A program made the translations under genes and the position numbers. Below the pieces are notes generated by a model that was not told where the DNA came from, ran no database searches, and saw only the letters and a program-made list of their open reading frames with translations. Below, piece after piece: positions 23,104 to 30,740 of a stretch of DNA of 37,009 nt (its first letter is position 1; the number at the start of each line of letters is the position of its first letter). The DNA lies in contig NW_005434572.1 in assembly GCF_000315625.1 (NCBI RefSeq), positions 40,631 to 77,639 of the forward strand. Direction: 5' to 3'. The stretch is from Guillardia theta CCMP2712 (taxonomy: Eukaryota > Protista > Cryptophyta).

Positions 23104-26100
23104 ATGGAGGGAGGACTGCAAGACAGCCAGGGCTATGGCAGCATCGGTGCAAGCTCCAGAGAGAGCACCCAAGGTCCTGCCATCGTGCGCCAATAATCCC
23201 TACACTGACAACCGCACTCGTGGAGCAGGACGGAACCGAAGAGGACCTTTCCTCGTCTTTGCGGCACTGAGTGCTATGATCTTCCTTGCTGTTGTAGGGC
23301 TCAGGAACGAGCGCCATCGAGCTCCCTCGAATGCTCTTGCGATCAAATCGCTGGAAGAGAGGTCGGGAGGCAACCACGGCAATGGTGACACGTACTGTAG
23401 CATGTTCTCAGATCCATCTGGTCAGTATGCGTGCCTCGCACGGATCTCAACTCACATCAGTCTTGCCAGAATGCGAAAAACAAAATTCAGATGTGGTTAC
23501 GAGCGAGAAGTACTGGGGCCCAAGTGAAGTCAGGGGTGAGTTGTGGAAAACTATGAAAGCTCTTGCGGAGGTAAGACATCGCCTTTCATGCTGCTGTAGT
23601 TGTATCGTTGCACCATCCCTTCGTCTGCTTACTTCCTTTCAATCGCACTTCCTTTCAATCGCACTTCCTTTCAGTCGCACTTCCTTTCAGTCGCACTTCC
23701 TTTCAGTCGCACTTCCTTTCACATGAACCTGATTTTTCATAACAGCTCGAACTGCGCGAGAAGGCACAGCATGCACAACAGAGCGCCAAGTCGGATGAGC
23801 AGGAGAGGCTCTTCGAGCTCTTCCGGAAGACCATGTCGAAAGAGGTCAGCGATATCCACAGACTGCAAGAGGACATGCAGAAGAATCACACCCGAGCTTT
23901 CAAACTCCTCGCTTCCGAGATGCTCAAGGGTGCCGACGACTTGAAGAACCGGTCAGACATCGAGACGGCGAGCGTTCGACAGAGTCTGGGGGAGCTGTCA
24001 CAGCAAGAAATCAGCGACAAAGAAAGGTTCCAACTCCCTTGTTTTCGAGGGGTAAAGAGATTGACGCTCTTCTGTCGCAGGATACTCTCAGAAACTAACA
24101 CGAAGACTTCGGAATTAGAGCGGCATATTGAAAACATGCATGAAATTTCGATGTCAACTCTAAATGGAACCGAAGATTATGCGCGACAGGTCGAAGCAGA
24201 TGTGATGAGAGGAGACAGCGACTTGAAAGCAAAGATAGAATCTCTCAAGGAGGAGATTGAAGGGCTCAGTGCCGACGAAAGGGTGCTCCTGGCAAATGCA
24301 ACTCGGTCCTTGGAGCAGGCCTCCGATGAAGAGTCGAGGAATCATGTACTGTTGTTGTCAGATATTGATCGGCAGCTTGCAGATTTGAATTCTACTCTGA
24401 TGAGCCAGTTCTATGATGAGAAGGGTGAAGTTCGAGCGAATCTAAGTAGCACCATGAAAGTGCTCCTTGAAAGTGTGTCGACTTTGCTCAGCGCCTCTCA
24501 CTCAAGATTCGAGACCATGAAGGAAAATGTGGATGAAGTCAGAACAGAACAGGTCAAGAAGAATGAAGATGATGAAGCTGAGTTGTCAAGAATGAAAGCA
24601 AACTTTGTGAAAGATCAACTCAGGATCGATGATGACCTTCACTTCCTCGATGTCAGGATTCAGCAATCATTCTCTCGATTGAGCGAAGCCCAGCAGGAGC
24701 TGCAGCAGCAAGCTGAACTTGACCGTGCGTTTCTCCTGGGCCAGCTGGAAAGCAACGCATCGAGGATTGCTCACTCATCGCACCTCCTCTCCGTCTCAGC
24801 TCGAAATGCCCACAAACAGTTTCAGCAGCACCTGTCGCAGCAGGATGTTCGAGTCGCCGATGAGTCCGCACGCTTGACTTCTGAAGAGGCTGATCGGTTT
24901 CGGGAGAGCAGCGGGACAGTCACCAGCAGCACAGACCAGCTCAACACGAGCCTGGCGACTACCTTGTCCAACGTGCATTCGAAGCTCAGGAACCTTCTGC
25001 ATGGAAGTATGACTCTGGCTTCCCAATCGCTCTCCAGGTTGAACAGTTCGCTGTGGGATCGACATAAAGCCACTGGGCAGACGATGGCAACTTTTCGGTC
25101 CAACCAGGAAGACAACGACCAAGAGCAGGAGCGCGTTCTGCAACGCGTAAAGCAGGATGTGCAAGTCGAACGTGCGCTGAAGGAGAGTCGATACTTCCTG
25201 CTGCAGAACAATGTCACTGCTGCAAGGCTCTTCCTCCTGCGGCTGAAGGAGCAGCTCTTGAAGAGGCAGCACGATGATGTGGAGAGACTCTCAGTGGAGA
25301 AGGGGACAAGAATGACTGAGTCGGACCAACGACTTGAGCAATCCACAGACAAGACTTTCGAGACAGAGAAGAGGTTCTTTGGAGAGAAATCTGATCATGC
25401 AACTCAGAGAGCGAATGCGGTTCAGAACAAGGTTGAGGAGACGGAAAGCAGCGTTCGTTCAGGGGTGGAGCAACTACAGAGGATGCAGCAGAATCAAGAA
25501 ATCAGCATGACAGGAGGACGTCACGATCTTATCGGCAAGATGCAATCAGACTCCCAGGATATCAATTGGATGCTTGAGGAACGCGTGAATCAAATAGCCC
25601 AGCTGAAACAGCAGCTGCATGCCAGCATGGAGCAGGAGGAGCAGTCAATCAGCGCGGAGAAAGGAAAGTTGGATGTGAAGCTGGTAGAGGCATCGAACCA
25701 GACAACACAGGCCCTGCTCGAGAGGATCGCAAAAGTGGAGCAAGACATCAGGAGGGACATGTTGCAAACCATCTCCGCCCTAGTGTTCAAGTCTGACACG
25801 CTGAAGAATCTCTCCCTTGCTCATTCGGCCGCCCTCTCCTCCAACATGACAGCTTGGTCGAACGAAGAGGAGACGCAGTTCCTGCAGTCCGAAGCTTCGA
25901 TGGAGCACGTGAAGTTATCAGTGTCGACTTCCATGCAGGTAAGAGATCGGGTCGAGATGTGGACGAGCTGACGTTTTTTTCTCGCAGGAAGCCTCGAATC
26001 TCCTTGCGGCCATGCAGGAGAGCCTCAAGGCCTCCGACTCTCAGTTGAACGGTGTGCTTGTCACTCTCGAGCAGCAGCAGCGCAGCAGCGCTGCCCGAGT

Positions 26101-29100
26101 GAACCGATCGACCGTGAACGGGTTGGAGGACCTCTTGAAGGCGAAGATGGAGAAGGCGAGGGAGGAACACCTTGCGGTGATGGAGGCGCTGGCCGAGCGG
26201 TTCGGAGCGATGAGGAAGCGAGTGGATGTGTTGGAGGGGGCATGCAATCTCACCCTGAGCATGTCCAATGAGGAGATCGGGAAGTTGCGGTCGGAAGAGG
26301 AAGCGTTCATGCGGCGCCACGAGGGGCTGGTGGACTCTCTGAGGAGAGAGATCGAGAATGACGCGCACGCGATCGACAGCAGGTTGACAGCGTTGAGCAG
26401 TCAGCTGCATGCTGGGGGAGCGAAGCTCCTGCAGGAGACAGGAGAAGTAAAGAGAGTGCAGGAGCAGAGCATCAAGGACGTGGAGGGCTTCGTAGATCAT
26501 GCCGTGAATGCTTCCTCCAAAAACTTTACAGCTGCTCTTCTCCTCCAGAAGGCGGACTTGCATGCGGCACTTGTGCGTACGATCAAGTCCTGGAACGATG
26601 AGCTGCTGGAGGACGAGGAGGAGAACCACCAGAAGCTTGCGGACGCTGAGAGCAAGTTCGAGCAGCTAAAGTCGCAGCATGACCAGCATAGGCTCCTCAT
26701 ATCTGGTCGCCTGCAGCAGCTGCTGACTGCCCTTGAGACCAACCGAGATGCTGCCGAGGAGGCGATCTCAACGCTGCATGCTGGCATCGTGAACTTGCAG
26801 CGCCGGCTGAACGAGACGGCCGAGTCTGTGCTGAGGAAGCGCTCGACCGACAGCGCGATGATCAAGGAGGAGATCACTCGCGCTCTCAGCGGTGTGAAGG
26901 CAGGACTGATGGCGAGCATGCGAGACCACAAGAAGACGCTAGACGAGGACCTCAAGGAGCAGGCGACTCGTGTTAGTGACGGGATCGTACACCTCATCAG
27001 GGAGGAGGACGCGTCATCGGCGAGCCTCAACGCCTCCTGGAGGGCGCAAGTAAGCGAGCAACGCTCGCTGAACGCGCAGCTGGAGGTCAAGATGCAAGCG
27101 CTGAAGCTTCAGCTGAAGAGGATGAGGGATGATGCGCAGAGGGACGTGCTCCAGCTGACGTCTGCCTTGGAGGAGGTCAAGAGTGCTGCAGATACCAGCA
27201 GGACCCAACTGGCCGCAAACTCTCAGCAGGACCTCGACGACCTCTCGTCCAAGATCGAACGTGCCAAGATCTCGCTGCTCGCTGCCAAAGAGCAAGTGTC
27301 TGCTGATCTGCAGCAGAAGATCGCACAAGCTGGTGTGGACCTGGACACGATGGTGGGCAAGATCAAAGGAGCTGAGCAGCGGCTGAGGGAGAAACACGGG
27401 GCAGACACGGTGAAGTTGAAGCAGGAGCTCTCCTCCAGCCTGACCTCCCTGAGCTCCAAGGTCAGCAAGCAGATCCAGGACACCATCGATGGCATCCGGT
27501 CTTGGGTTGACCAGAAGACAGGGGCGCTAGAGAGCAACATCGCGAGTCTACAGAGTGAGGCAGAGGAAGCAGAGCTGGACCTGCGGACGAAGATCCGTGC
27601 GCTCGACGAGAGGGAGGCGAACAACGCTGCGCAGCAGAGGGAGGACGTCGAGAGAGCACGGCGAGACCAGCGGAGCTACAGGGGAGGGTTAGCGGAGAGG
27701 GTGCGAGCGCTGGCAGCCAACATCTCCAGTGCGGCAGCAGACGCAAATTCGAAGCTGTCGGAGTTGAAGTCGAACGTGAGGCGAAGGGACTCGGAGGTCG
27801 CTGCGCAGATCTCATCGGCCGTTGCGAGGACGAAGGAGGCGCTGGCGGGGCTCTTATCCCAGCTGATCCCCTCCTCGTCTAAGAAGCTCACTGATCGCCT
27901 GCGCGAAGCTGCAGAGAGCCTCGACCAGGAGGTAGCAGCTATGAGCAGCAAGCAGAACGAGCTGACGTCACGACTGAGCGGGCTTCAAGGAGGGAACGCG
28001 AGGAGGGAGAGGGAGTTCGAGCAGGACATCGAGGGGATGAAGGAGAAGATGTGGTTGCTGAAACGAGAGCTGTCGCACAACCAGACGGCTGTGAACGAGG
28101 AGGTCGATCACATCCTGGACGTGATTCACTCGCAGCAGGCGAACATCATCCGCAACCGGCAGCGCGAGTTCGAGACCTTCGGCCGCGCGTCGGCAAGGGA
28201 GGCCGACGAGCTGCAGGACAACATCACCAAGACGATCCAGCAGAGTTCCGCTCCCTCCAGTGACGTCGACCGGGCCCGGCAGGCTATCCAGGCCTCCATG
28301 TCGTCTCTGCGGGAGTACTTGCGGCAGATTGAGGGGAACGCGTCGTCGTTCGGGTCCGAGGAGCGGGTGGGTTTCCGCGAGAAGCGAGCACAGACTCTAG
28401 CTGTCAACTCGACAAGCAGGTCCTGGCAGGAGGCGACAACGAAGAAGATCGAAGACTTGGACAGAACCGTGGACGAGGTGACGTCACAGTCTCGCACCAA
28501 GAGGACGAGGATGAACGAGAAGCTCAGCAGCCTGCAGGCCATGCTGAAGAGGATCGAGTGGGGGCTGCGGCAGGTGGGCAACATGCAGGCAGAGCTGGAG
28601 CCGGTGAAGTCAAATATGGAAGCTCTGTCGAGGAGGATAGGAGAGGAGTACAGCGCTTCAGATGCACGGGTGGAGAGGGAGGTGGCGAAGCTTGTGCGAT
28701 GGAGGGAGGAGATGAGCTCGCTCAAGCTGAGGATGGAGGAGGCGGTGGAGCAGGAGGCGACGAGGCGCAAGGAGGCCAACGGGAACATCACCGGATGGCT
28801 GGAGGAGGCGAACGAGCAGATGGGAGAGATCGAGAGAGACATCCAGGCGCTTCAACGCCGAAGGGAAGAGTTCATCGAGTCTCAGCCTCCTCCTCCTCCC
28901 CCGCCCCCTCCTCCTCCCCCCCCTCCAGCCTTCGTGAGACCACCTCTCCTACCGGGTGTGACTCCTCCTCCCCTTCCTCTGCTGTGGTGGGACCGTCGCA
29001 CGGAGACGGACGGAGTGGAGCAGGTGGACGGCAAGGTCGTGCTGGGGGCGGCGACAACTGGGCAGCTGTCAGGGTCGATCGCTCTCTCCGCCAACGGCAA

Positions 29101-30539
29101 GTGGATCGTGCACGTAGTAGTGTACGCGTCCGATGGCGGGGACTCTGGGGACACGCTGCAGGTGACGATCAACGGGGTGCCCATGGAGGCCGTCAAGAAC
29201 AACCGGAGGAAGGGAGCGCCATGTGTGGGGACCACGTGCTTGAGCAAGAAGGGCATCTACATGCTCTCCACCTCCATCGTCGGCGATCAGGTCCTGCTCC
29301 TGCCCCTGCCCCTGCCCCTGCCCCTGCCCCTGCCCCTGCCCCTGCTCCTGCCCCTGCTCCTGCTCCTCCTGTACTTCCTCTCTCTCTCTCTCTCCTTCTC
29401 TCCCTCCTGTACCTCTTTGTCTTTACCTTTCCCTCCCACTAGTACTTTTCTTGACCGTCCTGGTCAGGTGGACTACAAGTTTCAGTGGCAGAGCTCTAGC
29501 GGGCAGGAGGAGAAGCACATGTTCCTCGGAGCAGGGGAGGCAGTCTTCGTGGGAGATCCCAGCGAGACCCCCGACGTGCCGTCAGCTCGCAACTACGGCA
29601 CCACGATTTCTGTCATCAATGGGGTGGACGGAAAGTCTCTGGGCAAGGGCAGGAAGTCATCGGATGGGGCGGAGGAGCGAGGCTTCGAGATGCCTAAGGA
29701 CCCTCGTCTCTTCCTACTCCTCGGGAAGGCGCTGGTGTGGGACGGCATCGTTGACGGGGCGGAGGCGACGCTGAATGTGCCTCCTCCTCCTCCAGGGAGG
29801 AAGTACACGTGCGTTGTGACTCAGGCGGGGATGATGTCGCTGTATCAGGAGAACTGCGACGTCGGGGTGGAGCGCAAAGCTGAGCTGTCCATGTCGCCCG
29901 TGCTGGCGCCCGGCTCAGCTCGCTTCATCCTCTCATGGGGCAAGCAGCCGTCCGATCTGGACATTCACATGCTCGTTCCGGGGGTGGGAGGAGCGTCCGG
30001 CTGCGAGGTGAGCTGGAGGAACAAGGACTGCTTCGGGGAGGCGCGACTGGACTTGGACAACACGCAAGGGTACGGCCCCGAGACCATCTCCCTCTCGAGG
30101 ATGCGACCAGGCAAGTACATCGTCTTCGTCAAGGAGTACAACGGAAACCCACGGGCTCCCATGTGGGGCGTCTCGTCTGCTACTGTCACCTACTACTCAC
30201 CAGACATCGGAAGGTCTGCCCTGCACCTCCTCCTCCTCCTTGAGGACTTGCAAGCTCAAGTGTCACTGTCACTGTCGTGTCTTGACCTCACTGTGATCCT
30301 TCTACTTCTTTTAACATCTGATTCCTCCTCCTTCTCATCTCTTCTCTTTTTATCTCCTCTCCTCTCCTCTCCCTCTCTCATCCTCCATCGTTGCTCTCTT
30401 CTGAGATGTTGGCAGCATGGTGTACAAGGTCGGACAGGACGGCTACGTCGACGGCATCCACTGGCTGGTCCTGACGGTCGACGGAACTTCCAAGTTTCCT
30501 GAGGCCTGCACGCAGAGCACTTGCCCAGCACAGACATGA
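23104..30539 (+). CDS. Giant type II membrane protein (~2,200 aa): short tail, one TM, ~1,700-aa coiled-coil stalk, polyproline, beta-rich domains, C-terminal YfaP/DUF2135-like domain
   Basis: Spliced N-terminus MEGGLQDSQGYGSIG..RNRRGPFLVFAALSAMIFLAVVGLR (intron 23174-23228 with a CTGAC branch-like site); further introns near 23421, 23571, 24028, 25939, 29291-29467 and 30214 join ORFs 23833-25971 and 26012-30502; C-terminal LSWGKQPSDLDIH..LDLDNTQGYGPETISL..PGKYIVFVKEY; last exon MVYKVGQDG..CPAQT*. Confidence 0.82.
23631..23721 (+). repeat. 16-bp minisatellite (ACTTCCTTTCARTCGC)x~5.5, intronic
   Basis: First two units carry A, the later three G at the variable site. Confidence 0.95.
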
Positions 30540-30740
30540 ACTTATTCTTTGAGGGGAGGGAGGGAGGGAGGGAGGGAGGGAGGGAGGAGGAGGAGGAGGA
30601 GGAGGAGGAGGAAAGGATCGGGATGTGTAGTATGAAGATGAAGTAGTACAAGGTGACTTGACTGCTTCGCGTCCTCTACTCTTGTCGTACCCTCGCTCTC
30701 CTCTTCCTTCCTCACTCCCCTCAGCCTCCTCGTCCTCGTC

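Follow-up and report, generated by a model that had tools for sequence, protein, structure and literature searches.

A giant stalked protein with a YfaP-like head, probably a type II membrane glycoprotein, in the cryptophyte alga Guillardia theta

The arrangement in which a head is held away from a membrane by a long stalk is found in several groups of receptors and adhesins. Class A scavenger receptors and collectin-type receptors (SR-A, MARCO and CL-P1) combine a type II anchor, a helical stalk and a C-terminal binding head. Trimeric autotransporter adhesins (YadA and BadA) and the long arm of laminin form head-stalk-anchor fibres with non-heptad periodicities; BadA reaches ~240 nm, and the coiled coil of laminin is N-glycosylated. 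Almost all that is known of cryptophyte surfaces, with their periplast and fibrils, comes from electron microscopy, and names have been given to very few of the proteins there. Here we describe a gene of the cryptophyte Guillardia theta CCMP2712 whose predicted product has a comparable layout. It lies on the plus strand at positions 23104-30539 of the window, a stretch of 37,009 nucleotides from contig NW_005434572.1, to which all coordinates refer unless another contig is named. We read its product, with a probability of roughly 0.7, as a type II (N-in, C-out) membrane glycoprotein made of an anchor, a stalk, a hinge and a head.

The gene is a real seven-exon gene and a member of a small, uncharacterised family. 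Its exons (Table 1), which were translated and searched one by one, form a coding sequence of 6,729 nt for 2,242 amino acids, and each of the six introns runs from GT to AG and keeps the reading frame. The full-length relatives comprise one Guillardia paralogue, proteins from Rhodomonas and two marine environmental sequences, the closest named relative being from Rhodomonas abbreviata MMETSP1101. The earlier note on this DNA had proposed a search for paralogues, and in the Guillardia assembly (87.1 Mb, 669 contigs) a second copy was located on the minus strand of contig C182, at ~47-57 kb. It has the same anchor, cysteine module, W-K-T-M-K-A-L sequence, rod, proline linker and head, and in the sequence used (C182:47001-57000) a portion of the head consists of N. 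Uninterrupted open reading frames (ORFs) with the same order of parts are found in Rhodomonas (P0005 and P0152, of 2,254 and 2,263 residues), on a TARA Oceans metagenome scaffold (P0171, 2,475 residues) and on a 7.4-kb JGI contig that the ORF fills (P0172, 2,361 residues). The gene, the paralogue and these relatives have in common a basic flank with an anchor, a Cys-x8-Cys and W-K-T-M-K-A-L module, 127-residue repeats, a proline linker and a three-domain head (A-B-C), the set of features that defines what we call the cryptophyte giant stalk family.

These relatives also bear on whether the model wrongly joins two or more neighbours, for example an anchor gene, a coiled-coil gene and a YfaP-like gene. 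Such an error would be favoured by open frames that run through introns 4 and 5, both of which are stop-free by chance. However, the same order of parts occurs in single ORFs of 2,254, 2,475 and 2,361 residues and in the C182 paralogue. Moreover, the exon junctions are all collinear with those ORFs, four of them (1b/2, 2/3, 4/5 and 5/6 in the alignment to P0005) without any indel, so that a false fusion is hardly credible. Exon 6 is likewise collinear with the homologues and free of indels, and they read C-x4-C-P where this gene has C-x5-C-P. The earlier note had read the locus as one gene starting at the ATG at 23104. The single-gene reading agrees with the homologous ORFs, in which anchor, rod, proline linker and head are uninterrupted, and the start agrees with the recurrence of the tail motif Y-G-S-I in the paralogue and all homologues. 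What had to be added is the 55-nt intron at 23174-23228, which is required to enter the frame of the membrane segment. An alternative start at the ATG at 23135 was dropped after comparison with the paralogue and homologues, in favour of 23104 with this intron.

At its N terminus the predicted protein carries a 29-residue tail with the motif Y-G-[SA]-[ILV], present in this gene, the C182 paralogue, P0005, P0171 and P0172. The form Y-x-x-hydrophobic is that of a tyrosine-based sorting signal, and the motif may act as one. The single hydrophobic segment that had been noticed after basic residues comprises 19 residues with a mean Kyte-Doolittle value of 2.47 and follows R-N-R-R-G; no other 19-residue window exceeds 1.6. 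The N-terminal flank of this segment is strongly basic in all five family members, and in the four members other than this gene it is still more basic and the C-terminal flank is neutral or acidic. The basic flanks in five of five members, together with the retention of rod sequons by selection (see below), support the type II topology suggested previously. Beyond a variable spacer, all members share the module Y-C-x-x-F-[SA]-D-P-x-E-C followed by W-K-T-M-K-A-L. Its cysteine pair spans the junction of exons 1b and 2, as the earlier note wrote, and could form disulfides between or within chains.

A strong argument for the placement of the rod comes from its N-x-S/T sequons. All of the types previously listed are present, and with 13 and 12 sequons in the two rod parts they are enriched over the 5.3 and 5.4 expected from shuffled sequences (p 0.001 and 0.005). 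The head holds none. Of the 24 rod sequons that align with Rhodomonas P0005, at an identity of ~26%, 17 fall at the very position of a sequon there; 5,000 circular permutations gave 0.35 coincidences on average and never more than 3. The corresponding counts for P0171 and P0172 are 13 and 12, and across the three homologues the permutation means range from 0.2 to 0.35 with a maximum of 3. Asparagine occupies 20 rod columns in both Guillardia and Rhodomonas, and 17 of these are sequons in both. Within the conserved sequons the middle residue varies, and serine and threonine interchange. In a four-way alignment, asparagine is retained in 51-67% of homologues at sequon positions versus 11-15% at other asparagines. 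Hot spots occur at column 22 (13 of 42 copies) and column 109 (8 of 42) of the repeat described below. These comparisons indicate that selection has preserved the rod sequons as such, a pattern with few explanations other than passage of the rod through the lumen of the endoplasmic reticulum (ER) and its glycosylation. They thus argue strongly, if indirectly, for an N-glycosylated rod in the lumen or outside the cell, although we infer glycosylation itself from the sequons. Purifying selection on the N-glycosylation sites of a helical rod is seen here with unusual clarity.

The same data address the proposal that the protein is a cytosolic coiled-coil tether with an N-terminal anchor, in which the rod would resemble a golgin or a cytoskeletal linker and the sequons would be accidental. 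Long helical rods that are poor in proline and rich in E, Q, K and L are indeed commonest in the cytosol, and positive charges flank the membrane segment on both sides. However, accidental sequons are difficult to reconcile with 17 coincidences against a permutation maximum of 3, or with the finding that nearly all conserved rod asparagines are sequon asparagines. The conserved cysteine pairs at both ends, the origin of the head domains in extracytoplasmic families and the N-flanks of the homologues, which are far more basic than their C-flanks, likewise speak for a lumenal or extracellular rod and make a cytosolic one very unlikely.

The rod consists of 731 residues from exon 3 and 966 from exon 4 and is rich in E, Q, K, R, L, S and A. 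With only four prolines over this length, it matches the proline-poor helical stalk of ~1,700 residues described in the earlier note. Of the coiled coil proposed there, the long helical rod is upheld and the plain heptad coil is not. Specifically, in exon 3 and the greater part of exon 4 the power at period 3.5 does not rise above background (z-score near zero). The hydrophobic period that fits best locally is 3.6-3.66 along most of the rod and drops to 3.5-3.54 only in the last ~250 residues. The autocorrelation of residue similarity peaks at 7, 11, 18, 22, 29 and 36 residues and shows sharp peaks at 127 and 254 residues, with z-scores of 11.4 in Rhodomonas, 9.1 in P0171, 9.2 in P0172, and 4.0 and 5.8 in the Guillardia exons. 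An iterated hidden Markov model seeded with one 127-residue window converges on 49 copies, 12 of them in the Guillardia exons and 11-14 in each homologue. The copies follow each other at exactly 127 residues, with occasional spacings of 185 residues, and among 176 proteins compared the repeat is confined to the giant stalk family.

When the repeats are stacked, their hydrophobic columns are spaced 3-4-4 and 3-4 with hardly an interruption, and none of the columns shows the enrichment in glycine or proline that would mark a turn. A length of 127 residues could correspond to four heptads and nine hendecads in 35 turns, giving a period of 3.63 that fits the measured one. An AlphaFold2 model of three repeats (26078-27220, from a nine-row alignment) predicts two long helices, at residues 2-160 and 168-380, and no repeat folds back on itself. 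The most plausible reading of the rod is a long helical bundle that runs nearly straight. The length of ~250 nm suggested previously, from ~1,700 residues at ~0.15 nm each, holds as an upper bound for an unbroken rod. Pfam searches with all exon pieces yielded only sub-threshold matches to Apolipoprotein and Baculo_PEP_C, located in the rod, which we rejected as look-alikes in composition and periodicity (21 bits in this gene and, for Apolipoprotein in Rhodomonas, 38 bits, with a cut-off of 90 bits). A word-indexed search with rod residues 10-950 of the stop-free frame 26012-30499, a range that lies within one exon although the frame includes two translated introns, returned nothing at E<=1e-5, a result that is uninformative for low-complexity helical sequence. 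The 127-residue helical repeat is not described in any library searched.

The rod ends at a proline-rich linker, where the previously reported run of 14 prolines is encoded at 28886-28927. Linkers of differing length are found in the homologues, and the T-P-P-P before the head is conserved. A phmmer search of 1.84 billion representatives with exon 5 gave 3,781 matches at E<=0.001. A smaller set of eukaryote-like proteins aligns over the entire exon, and the matches to its second half include very many bacterial proteins, which often hold several copies. Pfam gave no match in the head pieces of the gene. The AlphaFold model of the head that the earlier note had suggested was obtained for a proxy, P0006, a natural fragment of 396 residues that spans almost all of the head, with 40% identity to exon 5. 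The 45-row input alignment included the three head pieces of the gene as separate rows. With a predicted local distance difference test score (pLDDT) of 88.8 and a predicted template modelling score (pTM) of 0.88, this model is confident and shows three beta domains, in agreement with the beta-rich C-terminal part proposed previously.

Comparison of the modelled domains with known structures by VIA-align gave distinct outcomes. Domain A (P0006 residues 1-122), which is split by intron 4 in the gene, has only generic jelly-roll matches, and its best Z of ~8 equals background. Domain B (residues 131-236) adopts a transthyretin-like or carboxypeptidase-regulatory fold (Z 11.9 and a root-mean-square deviation of 1.4 over 81 aligned residues with 5aq0_B); the corresponding Pfam model PF13620 matches 8 of 25 relatives and not exon 5 of the gene itself. 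Domain C (residues 237-394) has the TerD fold, with Z 11.7 to 2qz7_B (139 aligned) and Z 10.9 to 2kxt (145 aligned). A Foldseek search with the whole head found only multi-domain adhesins and pilins at low template modelling scores, and a search of PDB sequences with a domain C profile gave only weak transthyretin-like matches. In an alignment of 25 sequences, domain C has invariant W52, L89, D90, D92, G98, P99, E100 and T101 and near-invariant L50, D58 and D60. Five of its acidic residues are thus invariant or nearly so, and they possibly form a calcium site.

The 'YfaP head' of the earlier note is borne out by profile comparison. Domain C aligns with residues 142-231 of E. coli YfaP (annotated K-12 record) over 90 columns in hhalign, with a probability of 98.4% and an E-value of 6.6e-15. 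In addition, YfaP and domain C share the pattern W...D-L-D...L-D-x-D-x-T-x-G-Y-G-P-E...G-x-Y...Y. The nearest cluster in the protein Atlas, ranked first at 0.95, is 'YfaP family protein'. These matches indicate that the last head domain is homologous to YfaP, while its link to TerD is, as judged from the modelled structure, one of fold only. The Pfam model for this domain, DUF2135 (PF09906), found nothing in a six-frame search of the whole Guillardia genome, in which an E. coli control was detected, or in the 25 relatives. Our domain C profile matches six loci in the genome. Four further YfaP/DUF2135-like loci of Guillardia, set in different genes, lie at C14:491781-492350, C85:114664-115176, C162:46512-46940 and C148:91170-91661.

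The head also occurs in other settings. In bacteria, transthyretin-like and YfaP-like domains are adjacent in giant secreted proteins that carry PKD, FG-GAP, VWA, cohesin and type IX secretion system sorting domains. Among protists, P0034 (2,344 residues, with 38 cluster members from ENA and JGI assemblies) joins a type II anchor and a coiled coil to ~40 cysteine-rich repeats of the C-P-x-G type and ends in the same three-domain head. The presence of the same head on different stalks fits a binding tip carried on a spacer. One member of the P0034 cluster is labelled as a Promethearchaeia metagenome-assembled genome, probably through a binning error.

Roughly half of the probability given above for the anchor, stalk, hinge and head architecture falls to a location at the cell surface. 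The same architecture could instead serve as a lumenal spacer or tether in an internal membrane, for example in the ER or nuclear envelope, in a Golgi-derived or ejectisome vesicle, or in the outer plastid ER. SUN proteins and CLIMP-63 likewise combine type II topology with a helical rod in the lumen and a beta sandwich at the C terminus. Furthermore, conserved sequons require only passage through the ER, and a tyrosine motif can direct proteins to internal compartments as well as to endocytosis. However, the predicted continuous helix of 1,700 residues far exceeds the known lumenal widths of 30-50 nm, and the B-C module of the head is typical of bacterial secreted or surface giants. Inspection of the C terminus of the predicted protein also revealed no signal of the ER-retention type. 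An internal location is therefore unlikely, though it is the most serious of the alternatives.

For a type II glycoprotein with its head facing outward, the parts suggest the following course of events. The signal anchor would insert the protein so that the tail remains in the cytosol and the remainder enters the secretory lumen, and the short tail would expose its tyrosine-based Y-x-x-hydrophobic motif, with a presumed role in sorting. The juxtamembrane Cys-x8-Cys module and the first rod segment would probably set and lock an oligomer. The rod, N-glycosylated at ~25 fixed positions, would then assemble into a long, stiff helical bundle starting at this module. The polyproline run may provide a hinge that lets the head swivel. 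The head would be held up to ~250 nm from the membrane and most likely binds a ligand there, possibly with calcium. The oligomeric state and the binding of calcium and ligand in this scheme are what we infer from the arrangement of the parts.

Several observations weigh against this reading or against parts of it. Because the membrane segment of the gene itself has positive charges in its C-terminal flank too, the charge rule cannot by itself decide the topology. The rod was modelled as a monomer, with low confidence (pLDDT 67, pTM 0.23), and the head model represents a 40%-identical homologue rather than the spliced head of this gene. DUF2135 has no match at E<=10 in the pieces of the gene, and the TerD model PF02342 has none at the gene. 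A comparison of domain C with the Guillardia TerD fragment by hhalign gave a probability of 1.7% and aligned only the local W-G...D-L-D motif. Finally, YfaP is itself uncharacterised. The only match of PF02342 in the Guillardia nuclear genome is a true TerD domain at C132:153462-153806 (33.7 bits).

Table 1. Parts of the giant stalk gene, by position in the window
Feature	Positions	Strand	Description
Exon 1a	23104..23173	+	Start codon and most of the predicted 29-residue cytosolic tail, with tyrosine motif Y-G-S-I
Intron 1	23174..23228	+	55 nt, phase 1, GT..CAG; same position and phase in the C182 paralogue
Exon 1b	23229..23420	+	Basic flank, predicted signal-anchor segment (~23246-23302), spacer, first Cys of the juxtamembrane module
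Exon 2	23470..23570	+	Second Cys, then the conserved E-L-W-K-T-M-K-A-L-A-E module that opens the rod
Exon 3	23746..25938	+	First 731 rod residues; 1 Pro, 13 sequons, ~5 copies of the 127-residue repeat
Exon 4 (whole)	25988..29290	+	Rod part, Pro-rich linker, first part of head domain A
Exon 4, rod part	25988..28885	+	966 residues; 3 Pro, 12 sequons, ~7 repeat copies; last ~250 residues nearer heptad
Pro-rich linker	28886..28984	+	14 Pro codons (28886-28927), more Pro-rich sequence, T-P-P-P at the end
Head domain A, first part	28985..29290	+	Jelly-roll-like beta sandwich (predicted), from W-W-D-R-R-T-E to the end of exon 4
Exon 5 (whole)	29468..30213	+	Rest of domain A, domain B, main part of domain C
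Head domain A, second part	29468..29581	+	Start of exon 5
Head domain B	29582..29899	+	Transthyretin-like / CarboxypepD_reg-like sandwich (predicted)
Head domain C, main part	29900..30213	+	YfaP/DUF2135-like; invariant W, D-L-D, L-D-x-D-x-T-x-G-x-G-P-E-T
Exon 6	30416..30539	+	Last strands of domain C, C-terminal C-x5-C-P, TGA stop

The introns and flanks of the gene have features of their own. Because introns 4 (29291-29467) and 5 (30214-30415) contain no stop in the exon frame, a 1,519-codon open frame (25943-30499) runs through both and yields a misleading Leu/Pro-rich 'protein' from the intron sequence. Both introns are CT-rich, and intron 4 contains a (CCCCTG)n microsatellite. In intron 2 (23571-23745) a 17-nt unit that ends in t-t-c-a-g or t-t-c-a-a is repeated in tandem about six times, which creates a ladder of possible 3' splice sites upstream of the one that keeps the frame. 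A purine tract, (GGGA)n followed by (GGA)n, lies directly past the stop codon at 30560-30615. An environmental sequence, P0001 (255 residues, from a 1.9-kb ENA contig), shares 95% identity with exon 5 and continues into the sequence that corresponds to intron 5, suggesting that it is genomic DNA of a close relative of G. theta in an environmental assembly.

The giant stalk family offers a concrete, conserved candidate for a long fibre of the cryptophyte surface, with a topology that can be tested. More tentatively, the protein and its paralogue may form long fibrils of the cell surface, each a straight, glycan-sheathed bundle whose YfaP/TerD-like tip binds a partner in a calcium-dependent manner, a fuller picture that we consider possible but doubtful. 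If it were true, the family would be a new eukaryotic class of head-stalk-anchor adhesin or receptor, with bacteria, prey, mates or surface-plate material as candidate partners. It would also give the first functional setting for the widespread, uncharacterised YfaP/DUF2135 domain. This domain is abundant in bacterial surface giants, and the gene places it in a eukaryotic context that its own Pfam model misses. Our literature search found no paper on the giant stalk family, on DUF2135 or on a function of YfaP, and publications on cryptophyte periplast glycoproteins, Guillardia surface coiled coils and eukaryotic TerD domains contained nothing on the family.

The general layout of the protein is thus already known from head-stalk-anchor receptors and adhesins, whereas the stalk repeat, the glycan pattern and the combination of head domains are not described in the sources searched. 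Unlike class A scavenger receptors, which the earlier note had named for their similar layout, the giant stalk protein shows no collagenous Gly-x-y run in its translations and no SRCR or C-type lectin head by Pfam, and its stalk is about ten times longer than theirs. Trimeric autotransporter adhesins are bacterial and anchored by a C-terminal beta barrel, and laminin is secreted and heterotrimeric; we found no sequence relation of either to the giant stalk. Tandem helical repeats of ~100 residues, comparable to those of the rod, occur in spectrin and in apolipoproteins A1, A4 and E. However, the spectrin repeat measures ~106 residues and forms a three-helix bundle, while the rod repeat measures 127, has no spectrin match in Pfam and is modelled, at low confidence, without fold-back. 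The rod also lacks the proline punctuation of the apolipoproteins.

For the head, the closest fold is that of TerD, a calcium-binding beta sandwich of tellurite resistance (PDB 2qz7 and 2kxt), which shares the local W-G...D-L-D motif with domain C but has no sequence-level support for a relation to it. The giant surface proteins of bacteria share the B-C module, with 35-43% identity over domain C and often several copies. Those with pairs of CarboxypepD_reg and DUF2135-like domains differ in lacking this type of anchor, the 127-residue helical repeats and domain A. In E. coli, YfaP is a small bacterial protein encoded in the yfa operon of the alpha-2-macroglobulin type, whereas in Guillardia a YfaP-like domain forms the tip of a predicted eukaryotic membrane protein of 2,242 residues.

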